Shown piece by piece: positions 7,076 to 56,018 of a DNA stretch of 64,000 nucleotides (positions within the stretch are counted from its first letter, which is position 1; the number at the start of each line of letters is the position of its first letter). The DNA is taken from sequence record KU726251.1. One strand, given 5' to 3'. A model generated the notes under the pieces. That model saw nothing but the letters and a program-made list of their open reading frames with translations. It searched no databases and was not told the DNA's origin. The position numbers and the translations under genes were made by a program.

Positions 7076-7194
7076 TCTAAGGCTCCTATGAAGCTCGTAG
7101 GACAACTCATACCATCGGGTAATGCTATCCCATTACCTGACATTAAAATACGTTTTACGACCTTTATGTGCGCACCATACTCGAAGAAATTTTG

Positions 7195-7215
7195 CATAGA
7201 TATTATCTTCGTGAA
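7195..7215 (+). promoter_or_regulatory. early promoter motif
   Basis: CATAGATATTATCTTCGTGAA upstream of TAAGGAG RBS. Confidence 0.6.
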
Positions 7216-7238
7216 TTATCCTTAAGGAGCATTTCTCG

Positions 7239-19114: not shown

Positions 19115-19696
19115 ATGTGGCTACAAGGTAGCACGGTGTGGACGAAACAGACCGAAGGTAGCGGGGCACTCAGCGTATTCAAAGAATCGTTTTCGCTGTC
19201 TAGCCTGGCACCCGATCTCGTTGACCGTGTAAAAGAACATTGTCAGGACTTAATCTCACTGGAGCGTTTCCGTGAAACATTCAGTACCGCACGTAAGTTA
19301 CGTTATAGCGACGCGGTAGAGATGGTAAGACAGATCGAAGAGTTGGGTGAATTCCAGTTCGCCAATGCTGCTTTACAGCCATTCCTCGTTGCCATGCCGG
19401 AATATCGTAAGTTGTATAATGACGGTATGGCGACTGGTTATGAGAATGGCTTTTCGCGGTTGGATGTGTTCAAAGGGAATGCGTATATGCGTACCGATGA
19501 CCACTTCCGCGAAGCAACATCGGGCATTTCGACGAAGTACGATGAAGATAAGATTTGGCAATGGGCTACCAATGAAGATCGTGCAGTACGACTGAGTCGA
19601 ATCGATAAAGTGGATATTCAACTTAACTGGGCACGCATGTCAGCTTTCGACTGGGAAGATGGTGATCCCTGTTCGGAACTTGGCGCGACGTGTTAA
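19115..19696 (+). CDS. hypothetical protein
   Basis: AGGAG RBS, 193 aa. Confidence 0.75.
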   Translation: MWLQGSTVWTKQTEGSGALSVFKESFSLSSLAPDLVDRVKEHCQDLISLERFRETFSTARKLRYSDAVEMVRQIEELGEFQFANAALQPFLVAMPEYRKLYNDGMATGYENGFSRLDVFKGNAYMRTDDHFREATSGISTKYDEDKIWQWATNEDRAVRLSRIDKVDIQLNWARMSAFDWEDGDPCSELGATC

Positions 19697-23564: not shown

Positions 23565-23610
23565 TATTAACGCTTATGCGTGGTCCTGCAACACACACTG
23601 TAAGAAGATT

Positions 23611-23633
23611 GAGATAGATATTATCTCAGTGCA
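23611..23633 (+). promoter_or_regulatory. early promoter motif
   Basis: GAGATAGATATTATCTCAGTGCA. Confidence 0.65.
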
Positions 23634-23660
23634 ATCGACTATTCGCGGAGTTCAACTATA

Positions 23661-25295
23661 ATGAAAATTACGAAGATTAAAGACCGGATGACAATCGAGC
23701 ATCATGGTCAAGAGGTCTCATTTATTGGCTTACGTTATCGGAAGGATAACAACGCACCCGACTACATCACTGTTAAAGGTAAACAGATTGCACGCGACAA
23801 CATTCTCTTCATGGAATTACAACGCGTGTGGGATTATTTAACGCCAGACGAACAAGATGAACTGTTCATGGCGTATCTGATGCTGGACGAGCTGGCAAAC
23901 GAATCGACGGAAACGCAGCGTAAGCACATGCCGAAGATTGTGCAGACGATTGCGAAGTTCCACAAGGCCGAAGTGTATCGTAAGCTGTATCCCATCGATA
24001 AGCTGTGGATTCCGCAGAACATGGAAGATACGCACGATGAAATGAACAGTAATTATCCGGAAGCGATGACGTACATTCGTCCGGACTATTACGAGTTGTT
24101 GATACTGGTCCTGATGATTAAACCGTATATTCCGGTGTTCCTCACCATGGGGACGTTCCCGATAGGTAAGAACTTGCCAATCGAAACACATCGGAAAATG
24201 GTGTACAATCTGACATACTGTCTGGAGATGCTTCAAGACACAGAAGTCATGTCTTTACCTGCTATTCCGAAACTGCGTGGGTTCCTACAGACAGTGATGG
24301 AAAAGGTAGAAAAAGAACTGGCAAACAAAGGTACGAACAGCACCAGTTTGTCGGTACTGGCTACGGTGCGGGGCTATGGCACGGATATGATGGAAGATTA
24401 TATCCTGGCGTATGCTATTATTAAATTGTTGGCTGTCCGTGAAGTCGGTGGTGAATTACCGGTTGAAATCATGGTTAACAACAATATCGTCACCGGCATG
24501 TATTTTCTGGTTAAACAAGAGATTGAAACGGGTTTTGCAAATAAAATCTCTAACCAGCCGGTGCTGTTAAAAGCGCATCCAGAAAGTGTGGTATTCAATG
24601 GCGAAAAGGGTAAGATAAACGCCATGGATTTGGTGCAGGCACGTTCTCCTGCCCAGATGAAAGAATACGTCCGTACCGAGTACGTATTTAAAGAATACCG
24701 CTCTTTCTTGAAAACAATGCGTCTGGATAATGCCGCTCCAGCAGATGTTAAGTTATTGATTGATTCGCAACTGGCAACACACGACGGTCCTGTCTATACG
24801 TTGCACGAATGGTTAGTCGCATTAGCACTTCATCGTAGCGTGCATTATAAGACGTATACCGAATGTGGACCAGAAGCGTTTCGCTACGGTATGGCATTGG
24901 CGCAGGCAACTTATCTCAATTATGGAATGTATGACGTTGCGCAACTGTTAAGTTGCAATATGGTGCGTTCTGAGATGTCTGCCGGTTATGCAGCCGACCC
25001 AATTCGATCTGAACTCAAAGCAGATTTAGATAGATATTATCTTCAGGAGTATCGCAACCCGCGTAATCTCGAACCGCAATCTACACCACGGGAATCACTG
25101 ACCTTGTTACACAAGGATCACATCAACCCGTATCTGTTCCATCTCAGGGCTACACCAGAAGCAGCTGCGCTGCTGAAGTGTGAGACGGATCAGCCAAACT
25201 ATATACCTCACTTGTCACTGCACAATAGCCTGGCGGAGTTTATGGTGTTGAATGCACGTCGCAAGTTAGAAGAAGTTGAATGGTTTAATTCTTAA
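23661..25295 (+). CDS. nvRNAP sigma-like promoter-specificity subunit (phiKZ gp68-like)
   Basis: 544 aa; synteny in ChmC-gp68-gp69-gp70-beta block; early promoter upstream. Confidence 0.7.
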   Translation: MKITKIKDRMTIEHHGQEVSFIGLRYRKDNNAPDYITVKGKQIARDNILFMELQRVWDYLTPDEQDELFMAYLMLDELANESTETQRKHMPKIVQTIAKFHKAEVYRKLYPIDKLWIPQNMEDTHDEMNSNYPEAMTYIRPDYYELLILVLMIKPYIPVFLTMGTFPIGKNLPIETHRKMVYNLTYCLEMLQDTEVMSLPAIPKLRGFLQTVMEKVEKELANKGTNSTSLSVLATVRGYGTDMMEDYILAYAIIKLLAVREVGGELPVEIMVNNNIVTGMYFLVKQEIETGFANKISNQPVLLKAHPESVVFNGEKGKINAMDLVQARSPAQMKEYVRTEYVFKEYRSFLKTMRLDNAAPADVKLLIDSQLATHDGPVYTLHEWLVALALHRSVHYKTYTECGPEAFRYGMALAQATYLNYGMYDVAQLLSCNMVRSEMSAGYAADPIRSELKADLDRYYLQEYRNPRNLEPQSTPRESLTLLHKDHINPYLFHLRATPEAAALLKCETDQPNYIPHLSLHNSLAEFMVLNARRKLEEVEWFNS

Positions 25296-28768: not shown

Positions 28769-28791
28769 CAGATAGATATTATCTTACCGAG
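28769..28791 (+). promoter_or_regulatory. early promoter motif
   Basis: CAGATAGATATTATCTTACCGAG. Confidence 0.65.
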
Positions 28792-28814
28792 GTAACCAAA
28801 AGGAGCATTTACGA

Positions 28815-33203: not shown

Positions 33204-34910
33204 ATGGTAGAAATTCAAATGACTTACACGAGTATGGGGGTACGGGTTGAAGTCCCTATCCGCCAGGCTGAAAGGGCCATACTCGCGTGGGCCGAAGAGA
33301 ATATGCACGCCCCAAAGATGGGCAAGCAACATGGACGAATAACTACGGAACGCGGTGACGCGTACTACGCCCACATTCCGTCTTTAAGGACGTTCATTTT
33401 CCATAAAGTGTTCGCTGAGAAGATTAAACATATCCTCCAACGAGCAGCAATTGAATATGCTTTTCAGTACAAGCTGACAGAGCACCATCCTGAGCGAGGA
33501 ACACCTTACTGCTGTACATTTGATAACTACGGCTTCTCGATGGTAGAAAGCGATCCGGAGTCGCGTTTTTACTATCAGAACGAGGTTGTGGATGCAGCGT
33601 CCGATCCAAACCGACCACAGACAATCTTTGCCATTCAGACAGGTCGTGGGAAGACGAAGTCGTGTATGAAGTCGATGGTTAAACGGGGAACCCGTACCGC
33701 ATTGATTCACCGTCCGTCGTACGTTCCCAAATGGCTGTTTGACGTCTGTGATGATGAAACAGGACTTCGTATACTTCGTGACGAGGTGTTAGTTTGTACA
33801 GGCGTACAGGCGATTTACGACGCGCTGGAGATGGGTAAGTCGGGAGAGCTAGATAGTCGTGGTATTAAGGTAATAATCCTCCCCACGGTCTCTCTACAGC
33901 GTTTCCTGAAGGAGTACATTAACACTGCTGCGACTAACCCTGTGGACCTGGATACGTTTTATGATGTTCTGGGTGTGGGTCTGGTGGCGATGGATGAGGT
34001 GCACGAGCATTTTCACCTCGTTTACATGGCTGGTATAATGTTGAACCCTCCGGCATCGATAGAGATGTCTGCAACCCTTAAGCCGGGTAGCAGTAAAGCC
34101 TTTATCGCGGAGCGGTATTTAGAACGTTTCCCAATGGAGTACCGAATCAGTATTCCAATCATTCCGGTGGTTGACGTGAAGGCGTTGTACTATCGACTGG
34201 ATGATAAGAAGTTTGCGTGGTGGGCGTCGAAGATGACGCCGTATAACCACAAGCTCTTCGAAGGGAAGCTGATTAAAGAGAACTTGCATTTAGAATACGC
34301 GAACATGATCTGGGATGTGGTTGAGAAATCGTTCCTTAAACGGTATCAACCTGGCCAAAAATGTTTGATACTCTTTGCTACGGTAGCGATGTGTGAGTTC
34401 TTTACCGAGTATGTGAAAGATAAGTTATCGCGTGACCCTGTATTCCATCCACTGATGGTGGCGAAATATAATGCAGGCGATTCGTATGACGACTTTATCC
34501 AAGCAGACTTCTCTATCTCCACACCGGGGAAAGCGGGGACTGCGGTCGATAAACCTGGGTTGGTACACATGTACATTTCAACCCCGGTAGAAGACCAGCA
34601 ACTGAACGAACAGATGGCCGGTCGTCCACGTAAGATTCTCCACAACGAATGGGGTGAAATAGACCCAACGGTGTGGTTATTCCATGCGTATAACGTACCG
34701 AAGCATTGCAATTACCTGAATGCCCGCCAGAAATCACTCAAGGATGTCGTATTGTCGTTCCGTATTGCGACATCCCCCTACGTTGTAAGGAAATCACATG
34801 CTCACTCCGCCGCGTCCAGCAGAGCCGCTGCCACCCTACATCGGAATGACTTTAGCAAGTTTTCTCGAAAACATTCTAAAGGCGTATCCCGGCGTAGAAG
34901 ACGTCGCTAA
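33204..34910 (+). CDS. SF2 DEAD/DEAH-type helicase
   Basis: Walker A QTGRGKT, DEVH, SAT, QMAGR; start moved past terminator to ATG 33204. Confidence 0.9.
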   Translation: MVEIQMTYTSMGVRVEVPIRQAERAILAWAEENMHAPKMGKQHGRITTERGDAYYAHIPSLRTFIFHKVFAEKIKHILQRAAIEYAFQYKLTEHHPERGTPYCCTFDNYGFSMVESDPESRFYYQNEVVDAASDPNRPQTIFAIQTGRGKTKSCMKSMVKRGTRTALIHRPSYVPKWLFDVCDDETGLRILRDEVLVCTGVQAIYDALEMGKSGELDSRGIKVIILPTVSLQRFLKEYINTAATNPVDLDTFYDVLGVGLVAMDEVHEHFHLVYMAGIMLNPPASIEMSATLKPGSSKAFIAERYLERFPMEYRISIPIIPVVDVKALYYRLDDKKFAWWASKMTPYNHKLFEGKLIKENLHLEYANMIWDVVEKSFLKRYQPGQKCLILFATVAMCEFFTEYVKDKLSRDPVFHPLMVAKYNAGDSYDDFIQADFSISTPGKAGTAVDKPGLVHMYISTPVEDQQLNEQMAGRPRKILHNEWGEIDPTVWLFHAYNVPKHCNYLNARQKSLKDVVLSFRIATSPYVVRKSHAHSAASSRAAATLHRNDFSKFSRKHSKGVSRRRRRR

Positions 34911-35240: not shown

Positions 35241-35861
35241 ATGAGTCGTCGCAAAAAGAAACCCGCTTATAACCCACGTAAAGACGCCCGCGATTTCGTC
35301 AAGGCGATGATGCAGTCTGTGTTGAAAAAACAAGCTGTGTTTATCGAAAGTACCGAATTCCTGTCAGGCAAAATTGATCGGGAGCGTGAAGTAACTGAAG
35401 CCATTACGCACGAAGAGCTGAAAGCCTTTACGTTGAAAGCGCTGGATGAAGCACAGGCGGCTTTCCTTGGCATGTGTCAGCAAGGCAAAGAGCTGTTCGG
35501 TAAACTGATTGTTGAGGCAGATGCTAAGGCTGTGCCGGTGTTTGACATGCTGAACGATAACAGCAAAACGTGGAAAGAAATCAAAGACCAGTTCCACGTC
35601 GACCACACCGAACTGTCCCTGATTGACCAGCGGGCAAACATGCTTGCGATGGATATTCAGGGCACCAGTATCGAAATCTTCTCCACGTATAACGCGAAAG
35701 TGAAGTTCGTGAAGCAGGCGCTGAATAACGGTCATACCGTGGAACAAGCCGAAGTTCTGTTGGCTGAAGCTCTGGCTAATAATTCGAAGGAACTCCCTAA
35801 AAACGCCATCGTCGATCACAATGACGTTGTAGTAGAAACCGAGGAAGCGGCTAATGTCTGA
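35241..35861 (+). CDS. hypothetical helical protein
   Basis: AAAGGA RBS before ATG 35241. Confidence 0.75.
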   Translation: MSRRKKKPAYNPRKDARDFVKAMMQSVLKKQAVFIESTEFLSGKIDREREVTEAITHEELKAFTLKALDEAQAAFLGMCQQGKELFGKLIVEADAKAVPVFDMLNDNSKTWKEIKDQFHVDHTELSLIDQRANMLAMDIQGTSIEIFSTYNAKVKFVKQALNNGHTVEQAEVLLAEALANNSKELPKNAIVDHNDVVVETEEAANV

Positions 35862-38241
35862 GATCCAAGATCAGCGTCCGGGTAATGCCCGTCGCCCTAA
35901 TCCCGACCAGCCAGCCCCTGTGGCGGCTGCTACCCAACAAGAGATGATTCTTCCGACCGTGCCTGATGACGCGACCTCGGATGCAATCATCATGGCTATT
36001 AAACAAGCCAATCCTGATTTTTCTTTTGCCCGTGCAGAAGAAGTTTATCACCAACACTATCATCGTCCGGAGCCTAAGCTTGAGCGTCCGACGTTTGTAG
36101 AAGAGGCGTTGCCTGAACCTGCTGCACCTGTACCACCGGCACCTCAGACTTTTGCTGAACAGGTGCAGGAGCACCTACATCGTGCCCCGGAACCGGTAGT
36201 AGAGAAAGCGCCTACGGTAGAACCTGCTCCGCAGCCAAAAGCTCCGGAAGCGGTTGCACCGGCACAGCCGGCTGTAAAAGAAATGGAAGATGCAGCACCG
36301 AAGGTTCCGGAACAACAACAGATGCGTGAGATTGACTTCGGTAATACCCATTTAGCTGAAACCGCCGAAATGGGTGAAGATGAAGCCGATCGTATTCTGA
36401 CACAGTCGAAGATGTTGATTGGTCTGAAACAAGACCCTAACATCATTGCAGACTCCCTGCAAAAGTTCCTCGGTAATATTAAACGTTCACCGAAAGACGG
36501 CCGGCTGCTATTCGAAAGCCCTGAACAGCAACAGGTTTACGACGACATCTATCGTGCTTTGAACATGACCCCGCCACGTCTACAGGACGGCGTACCGGCA
36601 TTCGCGGGTGCACTGGACCGTGGTGATACCGCTTGGGAACAGCGCGTGATGTTGCCGGACGGCAAGGCATCTGGTGCTATTGCACCGCGTGACAATATGC
36701 ACACTGGCGCGCTGGCTGCTTTGCGTCGTGTACGTAAGTCGGGTATTCCGAACATGGTTTGGTTGCCGGCCACAGGTATCTACGTGGGCTTCCGCGCACC
36801 GCATGAACGTGACCTTTGTGACTTCGACATGCGTCTAACGCTGGAAACTGCGACCATCGGTATGCAGACCTACGGATTGATGCTGTCGTCGTCTTCTGGC
36901 GTGTACATGCGCCACATGGTTGAATTCGCACTTCAGTTTGTTACCGAAGCAACCATCGATTGTGCGGGTAACGATCTGCGTACGGTGCTGTTGGATACCA
37001 TTGATCTGGCTGACTACTGGCTGGTTATTCTGGGTCCGTTGCAGGCGAAGTGGCCGTCTGGTATTCCATGGACGCTGATGTGTGGCGAAGACGGCTGCAA
37101 CCAGCAGGAAGATGTGAAGCTGAATATCGCACGCTGTATCCGTTTCGGTTCCGGTCTGTTTAGCGACCTGCAGAAACAACTGTGGGCACGTCAACGCGGT
37201 ACTGAGCGTCCAGTGATTTCTATTGCAGAACAGCGCGAATATATCGCAGCGCATCAGGTTGACCCATCTTCGGTATTTGAATACCACGACGTGCGTGTTG
37301 AATTTGGCCGTTCTACCCTGGGTAGCTTCTTTGACTCCACCGAGAAGTGGATTGAAGACGTTAACGCGTCAACTACGGCAGCGCTGTCTGAATTTGCTAC
37401 CGAGCGTGAACGTGAATCCCATATGCGTTTAACTGCAGAAGCCCGTCGCTTAACGCGCTACGCTCACATGGTGAAATCTATCACCGTTAATGAGCAACGT
37501 GAAGTAAACGGTGAAATGCAGGTTATCCCACAAACTGAAACCGACACAGCGAAAATCGTTGAGATGCTGGAAGAGCTGTCTTCCGACCGTATCTACGTTG
37601 GTCAGTTTGAAAACGCGATTGCTGAATACAACGAACGTACACGTTTAGCGGTATTCGGTTACATGGGTAAACGCTGCCCGGCGTGTGGTAAAACACACGG
37701 CGAGAAAGACGGTCTGTATCGTATCGTCGCTTACTTGCGGTCCGGACAGGGTTTTTTTCGTGCTCTCTCGAGTGGTGTCCGAGATTCAGAAATTCTTGCT
37801 GGATCAATACGCCGATATTGGCTAGACCAGGAAGACGTTCCGTCCGAGCAAATCATTACAACGCTCAAGATGGATACCACCTCTCTCTTCAAGCAGCGTA
37901 GCACACGTCCTATTACGTATCAGGAAGCCCATAACGAGCTTCTGGAAGCGTATGACCGTACACTGGCTCTTAATACCGGCGACCATCAGGTAGGGTTGTC
38001 GGATTTTGAAAACCCGGTATATGGTAGTCTTTACGATATCTGGTACGCCACTTACTTACGTGAAGAGGTCGGTGAAAACTACCGGATGTCGATAGACGAG
38101 TTCCTCGACCGCCCCCGCTGGCAGATACTGCTGATGCTCGACAATATCCGTCGTCGCAAAGCGATTATCGCCAAAGCCGGCGAGCAGGTGGCAGGTGAAC
38201 GTGCGTTAAAGGAGCTGGAGAAAGATCTGACGGGACATTAA
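35854..38241 (+). CDS. putative tail/baseplate-hub assembly chaperone pair (G and GT-like); fused as written, probably two overlapping frames (G ending 37825)
   Basis: Pro-rich N-terminus; C-x4-C and CPACG; alternative frame PDRVFFVLSRVVSEIQKFLLDQYADIG* over a T7 run; gp51/T-like SIDEFLDRPRWQILLML segment. Confidence 0.55.
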   Translation: MSEIQDQRPGNARRPNPDQPAPVAAATQQEMILPTVPDDATSDAIIMAIKQANPDFSFARAEEVYHQHYHRPEPKLERPTFVEEALPEPAAPVPPAPQTFAEQVQEHLHRAPEPVVEKAPTVEPAPQPKAPEAVAPAQPAVKEMEDAAPKVPEQQQMREIDFGNTHLAETAEMGEDEADRILTQSKMLIGLKQDPNIIADSLQKFLGNIKRSPKDGRLLFESPEQQQVYDDIYRALNMTPPRLQDGVPAFAGALDRGDTAWEQRVMLPDGKASGAIAPRDNMHTGALAALRRVRKSGIPNMVWLPATGIYVGFRAPHERDLCDFDMRLTLETATIGMQTYGLMLSSSSGVYMRHMVEFALQFVTEATIDCAGNDLRTVLLDTIDLADYWLVILGPLQAKWPSGIPWTLMCGEDGCNQQEDVKLNIARCIRFGSGLFSDLQKQLWARQRGTERPVISIAEQREYIAAHQVDPSSVFEYHDVRVEFGRSTLGSFFDSTEKWIEDVNASTTAALSEFATERERESHMRLTAEARRLTRYAHMVKSITVNEQREVNGEMQVIPQTETDTAKIVEMLEELSSDRIYVGQFENAIAEYNERTRLAVFGYMGKRCPACGKTHGEKDGLYRIVAYLRSGQGFFRALSSGVRDSEILAGSIRRYWLDQEDVPSEQIITTLKMDTTSLFKQRSTRPITYQEAHNELLEAYDRTLALNTGDHQVGLSDFENPVYGSLYDIWYATYLREEVGENYRMSIDEFLDRPRWQILLMLDNIRRRKAIIAKAGEQVAGERALKELEKDLTGH

Positions 38242-38249
38242 TAGAAATT

Positions 38250-38280
38250 CGGGGCTTCGGCCCCGTTTTCTTTTTTTTAT
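38250..38280 (+). terminator. intrinsic terminator
   Basis: CGGGGC-TTCG-GCCCCG + T run. Confidence 0.85.
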
Positions 38281-38321: not shown

Positions 38322-39179
38322 ATGATTGATATTTATACCGACTATGCGGCTGTATTGACAGTCAACCGTCACGAAGGTCGTGCAGCACCGATGCTAGATT
38401 TAGTGACGCTCGGTATGGATTACGGTTACGATGTGGCGTTATCCGATGTTTATAGCAACCCGTTGTCTGACCCCGCGGACGAAACTGTCCGTCTGGAATC
38501 CATTATCGTGAAGGTAGCGGTTGGATTAGGCAACCGCCTCGGTATCGGACTTAATCCACAAATCGTCTTCCAGAAACCGAAAGAAACCGTACGTATCCTT
38601 CACGGTGTGTTGGAAGCCTTCGAAGAGTTCGAAGACAGTGATGCCCTTTACGGGATTGTCTCCTCTGGTGAGACACCAGAGTATATCCTGGAGAACATGT
38701 GTCGTTATGTTTACGGTGACGAAAACCTGCACTTCGAAGACCTGATTACTGTTGTCAGCCCACGCGTGCTTACCGTGATGGAAAACTTCTTAGCAGCAGA
38801 GTCGTTGGAAAGCCAGAAACGAAACAGCGACGATGTACGCCAAGAACGTATCGTCGCTTACTTGCGGTTGTTCCCTGAGAACCCGTCAGCGTTTGTCTTT
38901 ATGAATCTGCCTGCTGAGCCAGACTTAACGGTGGTGCAGCAGTCGTTAGAGTTTCGCGTAGAAGATGTTAGCGAAATTGATTTGCTGACGATGTATGCGG
39001 TGGGCTTATCGATTATTCCTCATGCGGAGTTTGATGGGGCTTACGGTGACTTAGAAAAGAACCTTGCCCTGTTGAACGTCGACAACGTCCCGCCTGGAGA
39101 AATCTTGCGGAAAGGATTGGAAGCGTTGAAAGTCATATACGCTAGTGGGGACGCGGAGGTAGATGATGAACAAGATTGA
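38322..39179 (+). CDS. hypothetical protein, probable virion component
   Basis: TATG at 38290; immediately precedes virion RNAP subunit. Confidence 0.7.
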   Translation: MIDIYTDYAAVLTVNRHEGRAAPMLDLVTLGMDYGYDVALSDVYSNPLSDPADETVRLESIIVKVAVGLGNRLGIGLNPQIVFQKPKETVRILHGVLEAFEEFEDSDALYGIVSSGETPEYILENMCRYVYGDENLHFEDLITVVSPRVLTVMENFLAAESLESQKRNSDDVRQERIVAYLRLFPENPSAFVFMNLPAEPDLTVVQQSLEFRVEDVSEIDLLTMYAVGLSIIPHAEFDGAYGDLEKNLALLNVDNVPPGEILRKGLEALKVIYASGDAEVDDEQD

Positions 39180-53348: not shown

Positions 53349-53403
53349 GGGGCCCCTTATCTAGGGGCGTGTAATTGGGTTATAACCAAAGGAACCGAAA
53401 CAA

Positions 53404-54681
53404 ATGGCAAACTTTGTAAAAAGTAAACTCGCCCGCGAGTCCGTTGAAGCTACCGGCGACGTAATCGACGGTCTGAGCAACGTTGAACCGGCAGAAGAGA
53501 ACATCGACGTTCAGCTGGCAGAAGTTGCGTCTATCGACGGTCAGCTGGAACAGCTCGATGGTGACCAGGAAACTCTGGCTGCTGATACCGAGCGTACCGA
53601 AGCTGCTATCGACGCTGCTGACGAAAAAATCGAAAACGGTGAAGAGATGCCTGAAGAAGCCATCGCTCACACCGAGGTGGCGCAGGAATCTATCCGTAAG
53701 CGTTGGGCTATCGATCGTACCAAACTGGCGCGCGAATCTTATCGCCGTGGCCGTGGCATGACCAAAGCAGCTCAGGAAGGCTGGAAAGAAACCCTGAAAG
53801 ATCTGTTCGAACGCTTCGTTGAACTGTGTAAAGCAGTTATCGCGAAAGCGAAAGAGCTGAAACTGAAGTACATCAACGTTGGTAAGTCCGCGCAGAAACG
53901 TGCGAAAGCTTACCAGGAGATGCTGCGTAAGCTCGGCAAACAGAAGAAAGAAAACATTTCTGGTGGCTTTATTAGCAAACTGTCTATCGAAGGTGAATTC
54001 GATGTGGCCAACTCTATCGCTATCGCGAAAGAGCTGACCGGCGGTAAAGCGAAAGATGCTATCAACAAGCTGTCCTCTCAGGCGGCTGACTCTGCTGTAG
54101 CGATCACCAAAACTTCAGACGGTACCGCAACCGCTGCTAAAGGCGCTGTTGACGTTGCCCTGTTTGGTACCGCTGCGAAGAAACTGCGCGCACTGCCGCA
54201 ATTCGAAGACGGCGAAGGCGGTCAGAAAGTTCTGGCACTGCCAGGCAACGCCTATGTACAGACCGGCACCAAAACTCTGGCAGGCGGTCAGGAATTCACC
54301 GCAGTGGCCTTCCTGTCGACGGGTGACGTTTCTGAAACGAAAGAAATCGCTACTCCGGCTATTTCTGCACTGGCATCTGCTGCGTCTGCCCTGGACGTTA
54401 TCGGTAAAGGCTTCGAGAAAGTCCTGCAAGACTTCCGCAGCTACGACGCTGACGTTGAGAAACTGGAAGAGGCTGCTGCCAAAGCTGCTGCCGCTCTGAA
54501 AAAATCCAACGACGAAGGCGAGTGGGAAGCGCTGCGTAATGCACGCACTGCAGCTGACCAGGCTGTGCGTAACTACCAGACTCTGAACCGTGCTGTGGCT
54601 CACGTTGGTAACACTGTTATCAGCGGCCTGAACGGCTACATCGGCGCTGGTATTGGCGCGTACGAAAAGTCTAAAGCTTAA
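53404..54681 (+). CDS. abundant internal head protein, paralog 1 (SPN3US gp53/phiKZ gp93 family-like)
   Basis: Acidic propeptide with ARES/AQES/AQE sites; strong codon bias; paralog of next gene. Confidence 0.8.
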   Translation: MANFVKSKLARESVEATGDVIDGLSNVEPAEENIDVQLAEVASIDGQLEQLDGDQETLAADTERTEAAIDAADEKIENGEEMPEEAIAHTEVAQESIRKRWAIDRTKLARESYRRGRGMTKAAQEGWKETLKDLFERFVELCKAVIAKAKELKLKYINVGKSAQKRAKAYQEMLRKLGKQKKENISGGFISKLSIEGEFDVANSIAIAKELTGGKAKDAINKLSSQAADSAVAITKTSDGTATAAKGAVDVALFGTAAKKLRALPQFEDGEGGQKVLALPGNAYVQTGTKTLAGGQEFTAVAFLSTGDVSETKEIATPAISALASAASALDVIGKGFEKVLQDFRSYDADVEKLEEAAAKAAAALKKSNDEGEWEALRNARTAADQAVRNYQTLNRAVAHVGNTVISGLNGYIGAGIGAYEKSKA

Positions 54682-54758
54682 TCCGCTTTACGTACTGAAC
54701 GTCAGTTGACAAATCATTAATGGCGGTACACGGCGTACCGCCTAGAGGATAGAAAAAG

Positions 54759-56018
54759 ATGGCTAACTTTGTAAAAAGTAAACTCGCTCGTGAATCTGTC
54801 GAAGGCGCAGGCACTGTCGTTCCAGATGGCATCGAGCTGCCGGCTGAGTCCGTGGAAGGTACTCTGGCTGACATCGAGCATGACACCAAACCGATCGACC
54901 AGCTGGACGCAGAAGCAGACGTGCTGGCAGAAGACGGTGACGAAACTGATGCACAGCTGGATGCAGTTGATGCTGCTGAAGCCGCCGCTGACGGCGAAGG
55001 CGAAGATGGCGAAGAGCCAATGGAAGTGGAAGAAGATATGCCTGACGAAGCTGCTGAGCAGCTGGACGTTGCGCAGGAATCTATCCGTAAGCGTTGGGCA
55101 TTCGATCACCGCGTAAGCGTTGCGCAGGAATCTTACGGCGCACGTAAACGCCGTCAGGTTGCTCGTGAATCACTGTGGGACGACATCAAAGCGTTCCTGC
55201 AGCGTATCTTCGACTGGCTGAAAGAACAAGGCCGTAAAATCAAAGATCGCTGGCTCAAGTTCAGCAACCAGGGTAAATCCATTCAGGCGCGCGCTAAGAA
55301 ATATGACGCGGCTCTGCGTGGCCTGGGCAAGCAGAAGAAAGACACCGTTAGCGGTGGGTTCATTAAGAACCTGACCACCGGTGGTAAGTTTGTTGGTGAC
55401 GACATCAACGTCCTGAAAGGTGTTCTGTCTACTATCGGCAGCATCTACGGCGAGCAGGATGCAGTGGTCAAAGATGCAACCCGCATGGTCAGCTCAGTTG
55501 AAGGCGGCAAACTGAACAGCGGCTTCGCAGCAGCGGTTAACAAAGCCACTGCAGGCAAAGCGGGCGAAGTTCAACTGCTGGGTAACCAGATCGGTAAAGC
55601 TGACGTGAAAGTGAACGGGGATGACCTGGAAGCTTCCTTCACCGTTATCGATGCTGAAGGCAGCGTAGAAAAATCTGTTTCTACTCCGTCTGCTCAGACG
55701 CTGTCTTCTCTGGTTGCGTTCTTCAACCAGCTGGGTAAAGCAGTCGAAGAGAACGTGAAAGCGTACCACAAAAATAACCAGGCTCAAGAATCGTACGAGC
55801 GGGCTATTGAGGCGCTGCTGAAACGTATCGACGGCGTGAAGATCGACGACAACGCTGAACTGACTTCCAACGTCCGTGTTGCACGTCGTGCAATCACCGT
55901 TGCGAACCAGTACATCTCCTGGACCGAACGTTGCGTTGCAACTGGCCAGAAAAACCTGATCGCCGGCGTTAACGGCTACATCAGCGCCGGTATCGGTGCG
56001 TACGAAAAGTCTAAGTAA
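54759..56018 (+). CDS. abundant internal head protein, paralog 2
   Basis: Same MANFVKSKLARESVE start and GYI.AGIGAYEKSK end. Confidence 0.8.
   Translation: MANFVKSKLARESVEGAGTVVPDGIELPAESVEGTLADIEHDTKPIDQLDAEADVLAEDGDETDAQLDAVDAAEAAADGEGEDGEEPMEVEEDMPDEAAEQLDVAQESIRKRWAFDHRVSVAQESYGARKRRQVARESLWDDIKAFLQRIFDWLKEQGRKIKDRWLKFSNQGKSIQARAKKYDAALRGLGKQKKDTVSGGFIKNLTTGGKFVGDDINVLKGVLSTIGSIYGEQDAVVKDATRMVSSVEGGKLNSGFAAAVNKATAGKAGEVQLLGNQIGKADVKVNGDDLEASFTVIDAEGSVEKSVSTPSAQTLSSLVAFFNQLGKAVEENVKAYHKNNQAQESYERAIEALLKRIDGVKIDDNAELTSNVRVARRAITVANQYISWTERCVATGQKNLIAGVNGYISAGIGAYEKSK

Follow-up and report, generated by a model that had tools for sequence, protein, structure and literature searches.

The locus in phage SEGD1

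The DNA analyzed here, hereafter the window, comprises the first 64 kb of record KU726251, the genome of the Enterobacteria/Salmonella jumbo phage SEGD1, a Seoulvirus (SPN3US-like). Our subject is its gene SEGD1_042, which is annotated as a hypothetical protein and occupies positions 35854–38241 of the plus strand (as do all features given below) as a single uninterrupted open reading frame (ORF) of 795 amino acids (aa). This stretch matches the SEGD1 record with 100% identity and equal coordinates. The gene is homologous to gp39 and gp40 of phage SPN3US, and to gp77 of phage phiKZ together with the open frame that holds PHIKZ076.4. A preliminary description of the window, made from its sequence alone, had proposed a hidden programmed -1 frameshift near the 3' end of this gene, yielding two tail chaperones of the G/GT type. 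Comparison with relatives strongly supports, for the gene family, -1 recoding at a slippery heptamer that leads to a short form and to one with a C-terminal extension; in the window, both frames are joined from the outset, and the heptamer lies out of phase.

The local features are readily found in the window. The frame of SEGD1_042 encodes a CPACG motif (37675–37689), read directly from the window sequence. Its Cys pair is invariant among the close relatives and nearly invariant throughout the family, and the same holds for a second, upstream Cys pair; since both are conserved together, they likely form a zinc site. The frame that is +1 relative to CPACG reads ...PDRVFFVLSRVVSEIQKFLLDQYADIG* and ends at a stop codon at 37823–37825. 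A T7 run (37752–37758), the sole homopolymer of at least 7 bases in SEGD1_042, gives rise to the slippery heptamer T_TTT_TTC at 37753–37759, which is in phase with this +1 frame and out of phase with SEGD1_042. SEGD1_042 contains four heptamers of the X_XXY_YYZ kind, three of them at the T run, and thus one such heptamer taken alone is unremarkable; it is the conservation in relatives that exceeds chance. Behind the heptamer follows a segment (37760–37825) that in the relatives would be dual-coding, with frame 2 holding the last 21 codons and the stop of the short form, and frame 1 the start of the extension. The C-terminal extension itself (phrog_7580/phrog_12109) spans 37759–38241, begins at an invariant Arg codon and is found in the -1 frame in all relatives. 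An ATG at 37870–37872, which serves as start of 'gp40' in SPN3US-type annotations, lacks a Shine-Dalgarno sequence: no GGAGG-like motif precedes it in the window, and neither GTG nor TTG occurs in frame between the heptamer site and this ATG. The motif, the +1-frame peptide with its stop, the heptamer, the -1 frame that stays open to 38241 and the ATG without Shine-Dalgarno sequence had all been reported in the preliminary description, and we read each of them at the same place.

However, the frame that bears the heptamer is closed upstream by a stop codon at 37646–37648, so that it is open for just 58 codons and contains no start. Therefore, the window encodes no 655-aa product. Likewise, as positions 35854–38241 form one ORF with the heptamer out of phase, the 795-aa product requires no shift. 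The product sizes predicted earlier, about 655 and 795 aa, do match SPN3US gp39 and the SEGD1 ORF, while the smaller of the two is not encoded in the window.

Comparison with the SPN3US group

To describe the gene in its closest relatives, we assembled 28 loci from five genera, hereafter the SPN3US group. Eleven GenBank relatives represent Seoulvirus, Erskinevirus, Machinavirus and Wellingtonvirus, while 17 IMG/VR contigs add Derbicusvirus-type phages. One of the two peptide patterns employed to fetch the IMG/VR loci contained Phe-Phe, which biases the amino acids at this position, though not the codon choice or the frame layout. SPFM phage records were left out of the frame analysis. In LR535901, LR535903-08, LR535911-13 and LR535917, the gene is matched in 13–34 separate pieces with truncated proteins, and these deposits look indel-rich and unfit for such a purpose.

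SPN3US is 99.1% identical to SEGD1 over the stretch, with 2387 against 2388 bases, and is annotated with two genes, gp39 (656 aa) and gp40 (123 aa). Its T run is identical to that of SEGD1, and the length difference resides in a divergent patch 12 nucleotides (nt) upstream of the heptamer. All 28 loci share one layout: an upstream ORF of 651–720 aa is accompanied by a downstream ORF in the -1 frame, an unvarying T_TTT_TTC heptamer lies in phase with the upstream ORF, and the distance from the heptamer to the stop of this 0 frame is exactly 63 nt. The -1 frame is open from 12–141 nt before the heptamer and continues for 153–164 codons after it.

No start codon of the downstream ORF is conserved. 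Its first ATG is located 41 to 308 nt past the upstream stop, depending on the phage, and the position of the ATG at 37870 is occupied in other genera by the non-start Leu codons CTA, CTC, CTT and CTG, or by TTG in phiEaH2. Searching a set of 5.8 billion proteins for a fused form revealed no protein of 437–1391 aa that carries the extension; the full-length homologs of the upstream ORF (26 of 31 matches) all comprise 616–706 aa. The 795-aa protein is recorded solely in KU726251, and in all relatives examined the gene is split at the T-rich site.

Onset of coding in the -1 frame

The position at which the -1 frame starts to behave as coding sequence can be narrowed down by substitution patterns. 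Past the upstream stop, variable columns in this frame amount to 29 of 55 first, 16 of 56 second and 55 of 56 third codon positions; this signature sets in right at the upstream stop and hence well ahead of any ATG. Within the overlap, the first -1 codon after the heptamer encodes Arg in 23 of 23 distinct sequences, employing all four CGN codons, while the overlapping 0-frame residue varies (A in nine, V in seven, E in six and G in one of them). In agreement, tblastn with the window translation from one codon past the heptamer onwards aligned from residue 1 in all relatives of the SPN3US group. Upstream of the heptamer, the -1 frame is not conserved and contains stop codons at -21 (three sequences) and -15 (one sequence). 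Since non-conservation and stops on one side meet conservation directly after the heptamer on the other, the frame transition is limited to a stretch of about 18 nt with the heptamer at its centre. In the codon before the heptamer, Val is exchanged for Leu among relatives, yet the T in its third position is kept.

The 0-frame tail behind the heptamer is conserved as well, with synonymous changes among the 23 distinct sequences. Consequently, both products appear to be under selection.

Distant relatives

A tblastn search with the upstream part retrieved 222 phage records, the hosts of which include Pseudomonas, Erwinia, Serratia, Klebsiella, Vibrio, Ralstonia, Burkholderia and Xanthomonas. From these more distant phages, 13 lineages beyond the SPN3US group were picked individually and inspected. 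Their upstream proteins are shorter (476–581 aa), while the extensions are homologous across the family. The perfect in-phase T_TTT_TTY with the -1 layout was found in ten of the 13 lineages: phiKZ, 201phi2-1, RAY, RSL2, Haymo, SA002, LucasX (with a T8 run), VP4B, FBKp24 and PhiEaH1. The preliminary description had named an alignment of orthologs, including those of SPN3US, phiKZ and 201phi2-1, as a way to check its proposal, and in these three phages both the slippery site and the open -1 frame are indeed conserved.

In phiKZ (NC_004629), the homolog is gp77 (21% identity, expect value (E) 2e-16 in tblastn), which ends shortly past a Phe-Phe pair; this pair is encoded in a T7 run with an in-phase T_TTT_TTT. 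Starting 12 nt ahead of the run, the -1 frame stays open for 171 codons, of which the annotated PHIKZ076.4 covers just the last 80, after a 218-nt 'gap' behind gp77. This 'intergenic gap' is conserved -1-frame coding sequence. From the T run to the annotated start of PHIKZ076.4 there are 87 codons, none of them ATG, GTG or TTG, while the conserved domain (phrog_12109) already begins about 26 residues past the run. Among phiKZ, PhiPA3, 201phi2-1 and PS119XW, conservation of the -1 translation sets in at the T run, ahead of all annotated starts.

All fetched records annotate two genes, and in none of them did we find a joined or slippage annotation. Taken at face value, this would mean two ordinary genes, with the downstream protein starting alone at a non-canonical start or by reinitiation and without any trans-frame product. 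Such an arrangement would fit the Vibrio phage pVa-21, in which an ATG with a GAGGA stands at the homologous position, and a Met is present about 35 residues past the site in PhiPA3, 201phi2-1 and PS119XW. However, the -1 frame is under purifying selection from the heptamer onwards, 63 nt ahead of the upstream stop, the ATG of SPN3US is not conserved, and phiKZ offers no start codon over the 87 codons mentioned, although its conserved domain begins far earlier. Furthermore, the relative frame is -1 in every lineage examined. We thus regard two independent genes as a very improbable explanation for the family as a whole.

Mode of frame change

We infer that ribosomes switch frames here and that both forms accumulate. 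In this model, the gene family (gp39 of SPN3US, gp77 of phiKZ) would produce two proteins from one start. Standard decoding would lead to the short form, which ends 21 codons past the conserved Phe-Phe. Some ribosomes would slip back by one base on the T_TTT_TTY that encodes both Phe residues, whereby both Phe tRNAs could re-pair, and would then read about 160 more codons, adding a helical extension domain, so that the long form is made at a fixed ratio. As no start is visible, the tail in the -1 frame would have been annotated as a small separate gene. In the SEGD1 record, a 22-nt copy from the next gene, one base longer than the stretch it replaces, results in a gene that encodes the long form directly and no short form. 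We consider this scenario, a family with one start and two forms made by a ribosomal -1 shift at T_TTT_TTY, with the long form encoded directly through the patch in SEGD1, to be the probable one.

An RNA polymerase that slips on the T7 run and adds one U to some transcripts would, after normal translation, result in the same long protein. The run comprises 7 or 8 T in most lineages and is the only one of at least 7 bases in the ORF, the phages use their own multisubunit RNA polymerases, and no stimulatory RNA structure is supported. On the other hand, T7 is known to be short for efficient slippage by bacterial RNA polymerase. The second Phe codon is TTC in 23 of 23 distinct SPN3US-group sequences and never TTT, which would lengthen the run. 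Moreover, the run ranges from T5 to T8 across the family (T7 in the window): VP4B has a perfect heptamer with just T6, and the -1 frame is conserved from the site even in PS119XW (T5) and PhiPA3 (T6). The fixed TTC and the lineages with T5–T6 argue mildly against transcriptional slippage, which we consider unlikely.

Candidate stimulators of a ribosomal shift were evaluated as well. A 5-bp stem (37766–37770 with 37780–37784, overall 37766–37784) with a 9-nt loop follows the heptamer after a 6-nt spacer. It exists as announced in the preliminary description, but finds no support as a stimulator: the stem pairs in 92.5% of cells, no covariation is seen across 16 relatives, and all changes break it. 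The 101 nt downstream of the heptamer in the window fold no better than shuffled sequences (z = -0.93), and the alifold consensus, at -4 kcal/mol, does not provide a supported stimulator either. An upstream AGGG was discarded as a Shine-Dalgarno-like element, being unconserved and too near the heptamer. Dual coding accounts for the marked conservation at the nucleotide level in the 40 nt that follow the heptamer.

Some observations weigh against ribosomal recoding in the form proposed here. First, neither a supported 3' stimulator nor an upstream Shine-Dalgarno-like element was found, and the T7 run could equally support transcriptional slippage. Second, the sites of three distant lineages are imperfect, namely G_TTT_TTT in PhiPA3, A_TTT_TTC in PS119XW and A_CTT_TTT in pVa-21. 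The pVa-21 pair contains no T run of at least 6 bases, and since the GAGGA and ATG of its downstream gene stand where SPN3US has its Met, independent initiation is probable in part of the family. Third, the existence of the long form in the relatives is deduced from comparison of sequences. Finally, if the patch in SEGD1 is real, this phage was isolated without a short form, which would argue against the short form being essential.

The 22-nt patch in SEGD1

The single ORF of SEGD1 traces back to a patch of 22 nt at 37720–37741, which is an exact copy of positions 38847–38868 and replaces a stretch that is conserved in the relatives. The source copy is located within the next gene, SEGD1_043 (gp41 of SPN3US), and is present in SPN3US as well, where it is the only copy. 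Thus patch and source form a direct repeat, 1127 nt apart in adjacent genes, and are in frame in both. It is the sole perfect coding repeat of such length in the 64-kb window, and the chance expectation for an exact 22-nt repeat is zero. The patch is in frame, free of stop codons and, in net terms, one base longer than the replaced stretch, and therefore the upstream ORF continues in the reading frame of the extension from just before the heptamer. This fusion leaves the heptamer out of phase and SEGD1 without an ORF for the short form, while the length of the 795-aa protein is as expected for the long form.

Whether the patch is a genuine templated mutation or an error of the deposit is a nearly balanced question. 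In the latter case, which concerns the window only, the true phage would be SPN3US-like and the single ORF an artefact; we give this a little less than an even chance. Among about 40 Seoulvirus-type records, the patch is present in SEGD1 alone, the fused protein is found in no other assembly, and the overwritten stretch codes for a motif with hardly any variation among 23 distinct relatives. However, the assembly looks clean, as the other internal indels relative to SPN3US over 10.4 kb all lie between annotated genes. In addition, assemblers do not typically err by placing an exact 22-nt copy at an ectopic site that has almost no flanking homology, and this copy is in frame and without stops.

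Protein family and possible function

Neither Pfam nor NCBIfam gave a match for the two parts of the gene or, up to E = 1–10, for 11 diverse members of the family, and all PHROG matches were to families of unknown function. A sequence search of the PDB returned just two chance-level matches (best E 0.043), and Foldseek against the PDB found nothing below E = 1.5. The AlphaFold model of SEGD1_042 has a mean predicted local distance difference test (pLDDT) score of 60.5, with a confident core at approximately residues 195–615. In the model, the Pro/Ala-rich N-terminal region and the region around patch and heptamer are disordered, while the extension is helical at modest confidence.

Beyond family members, Foldseek against BFVD listed a 'Baseplate protein' at rank 11 (E 3e-15) and a 'Baseplate hub assembly protein, bacteriophage T4-like' at rank 17 (E 3.8e-5, template modeling (TM) score 0.47 on the target, root mean square deviation 9.2, 13% identity). 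In addition, one depositor noted 'T4 gp26 like' for an Erwinia phage homolog. The preliminary description had seen a resemblance of the two parts to T4 gp26 and gp51; for gp26 it finds an echo in one weak Foldseek match and the depositor's note, while no search returned anything like gp51. The likeness to T4 gp26 is thus weak and should be taken as a lead, not as membership. It rests on the names of the BFVD entries matched by the core of the model and on that note, whereas the protein exceeds the matched BFVD entry two- to threefold in length and no Pfam, NCBIfam, named PHROG or PDB match points in the same direction.

In the records of phiKZ and 201phi2-1, neighbouring genes are marked as virion proteins, while the homolog of SEGD1_042 is not. 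Our best functional guess is a non-virion assembly factor, because of the weak baseplate-hub-assembly-like fold; the missing virion mark fits. An identity with the nuclear import factor Imp1/PicA, described from the gp67–70 locus of phiKZ, was considered and dismissed, as the phiKZ homolog is gp77 and not gp69.

Comparison with known recoding systems

Among tailed phages, tail chaperones provide the best-known programmed frameshifts. The gene family shares with lambda G/GT, P2 E/E+E' and Mu that one start serves two proteins with a common N-terminal part, that the minor form is extended by a -1 shift at an X_XXY_YYZ site near the end of the short ORF, and that the downstream ORF lacks a separate start; the absence of a virion mark on the homologs in the phiKZ and 201phi2-1 records is a further parallel. 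In contrast, the shared part comprises about 100–140 aa in tail chaperones and about 635 aa here. Tail chaperone genes are located between those for tail tube and tape measure, whereas SEGD1_042 is surrounded by genes for RNA-polymerase subunits and a helicase-like gene. Neither a tail tube nor a tape measure gene is adjacent, as the preliminary description had already recognized. Finally, no sequence or fold match to a tail chaperone family was obtained from Pfam or the PDB sequence and fold searches. Given its size, neighbourhood, sequence and fold, the pair is not a tail assembly chaperone, although it follows a G/GT-like logic of expression.

A second point of reference is dnaX of Escherichia coli, in which a -1 shift at a homopolymeric-type heptamer within a long ORF gives two forms, tau and gamma, at a set ratio. 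However, the shifted form of dnaX is the shorter one, while it would be the longer one here, and dnaX relies on a strong upstream Shine-Dalgarno-like element and a downstream hairpin, in contrast to the lack of a supported stimulator in the present family. Sites of transcriptional slippage in insertion sequence (IS) elements and some phage genes resemble the junction insofar as a short A/T homopolymer is found where two overlapping frames meet. They differ as the run here is shorter than in the well-characterised cases and both its phase and the following base fit a ribosomal heptamer.

In the literature searched, the coverage of which omits most subscription-journal papers, no description of a frameshift in this gene was found. 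The site would extend the known class of -1 frameshift sites by one more member, which resides in a gene family new to this class. On balance, we lean toward the view that phiKZ-related, nucleus-forming jumbo phages contain an unannotated -1 site in the gene of a zinc-binding, probably non-virion protein with two isoforms, that the small downstream genes represent the tail of the long isoform, and that SEGD1 is a natural, hard-wired variant. Hosts of the jumbo phages with the proposed site are Pseudomonas, Salmonella, Erwinia, Ralstonia, Xanthomonas, Klebsiella, Serratia and Vibrio.

If this holds true, it would be a second conserved case of frameshifting in tailed phages, in an unrelated gene that is present in 222 jumbo-phage records. 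The annotation of such genomes would have to be corrected, as illustrated by phiKZ 076.4, which represents the last 80 of 171 open codons. A pair of isoforms at a fixed ratio would be added to a protein of unknown function, and proteomics or ribosome profiling of phiKZ and SPN3US would have a precise region to look at. If the SEGD1 record is correct, a phage can be isolated with the long form alone encoded.

Neighbourhood of SEGD1_042 and other features of the window

The start of SEGD1_042 overlaps the end of the upstream gene SEGD1_041, by synteny the counterpart of phiKZ gp78, by 8 nt (35854–35861). This overlap suggests that translation of both genes is coupled. Directly 3' of the SEGD1_042 stop, a terminator-like GC hairpin with a T tail is located at 38250–38275. 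It belongs to a repeat family (D2) of similar terminator-like elements, others of which are found at 19694 and 33155.

Three further observations concern the remainder of the window. In the helicase-like gene SEGD1_039, positions 33500–34200 show about 190 differences from SPN3US in 700 nt, compared to a divergence of approximately 1% elsewhere, and judged by this contrast the segment looks like a recombined mosaic. A motif around AGATAGATATTATCT, at times followed by CTTAAGGAGCATTT, is repeated at 7179–7234, 23597–23652, 25013–25044 and 28772–28810 (families D1, D3 and D8), and may represent a cassette of phage promoter and ribosome-binding site. Finally, the region 53397–56014 contains three pairs of 43–56-nt repeats that are 85–91% identical and spaced about 1340–1390 nt apart (families D4–D6), which indicates that it probably holds tandem paralogous genes.

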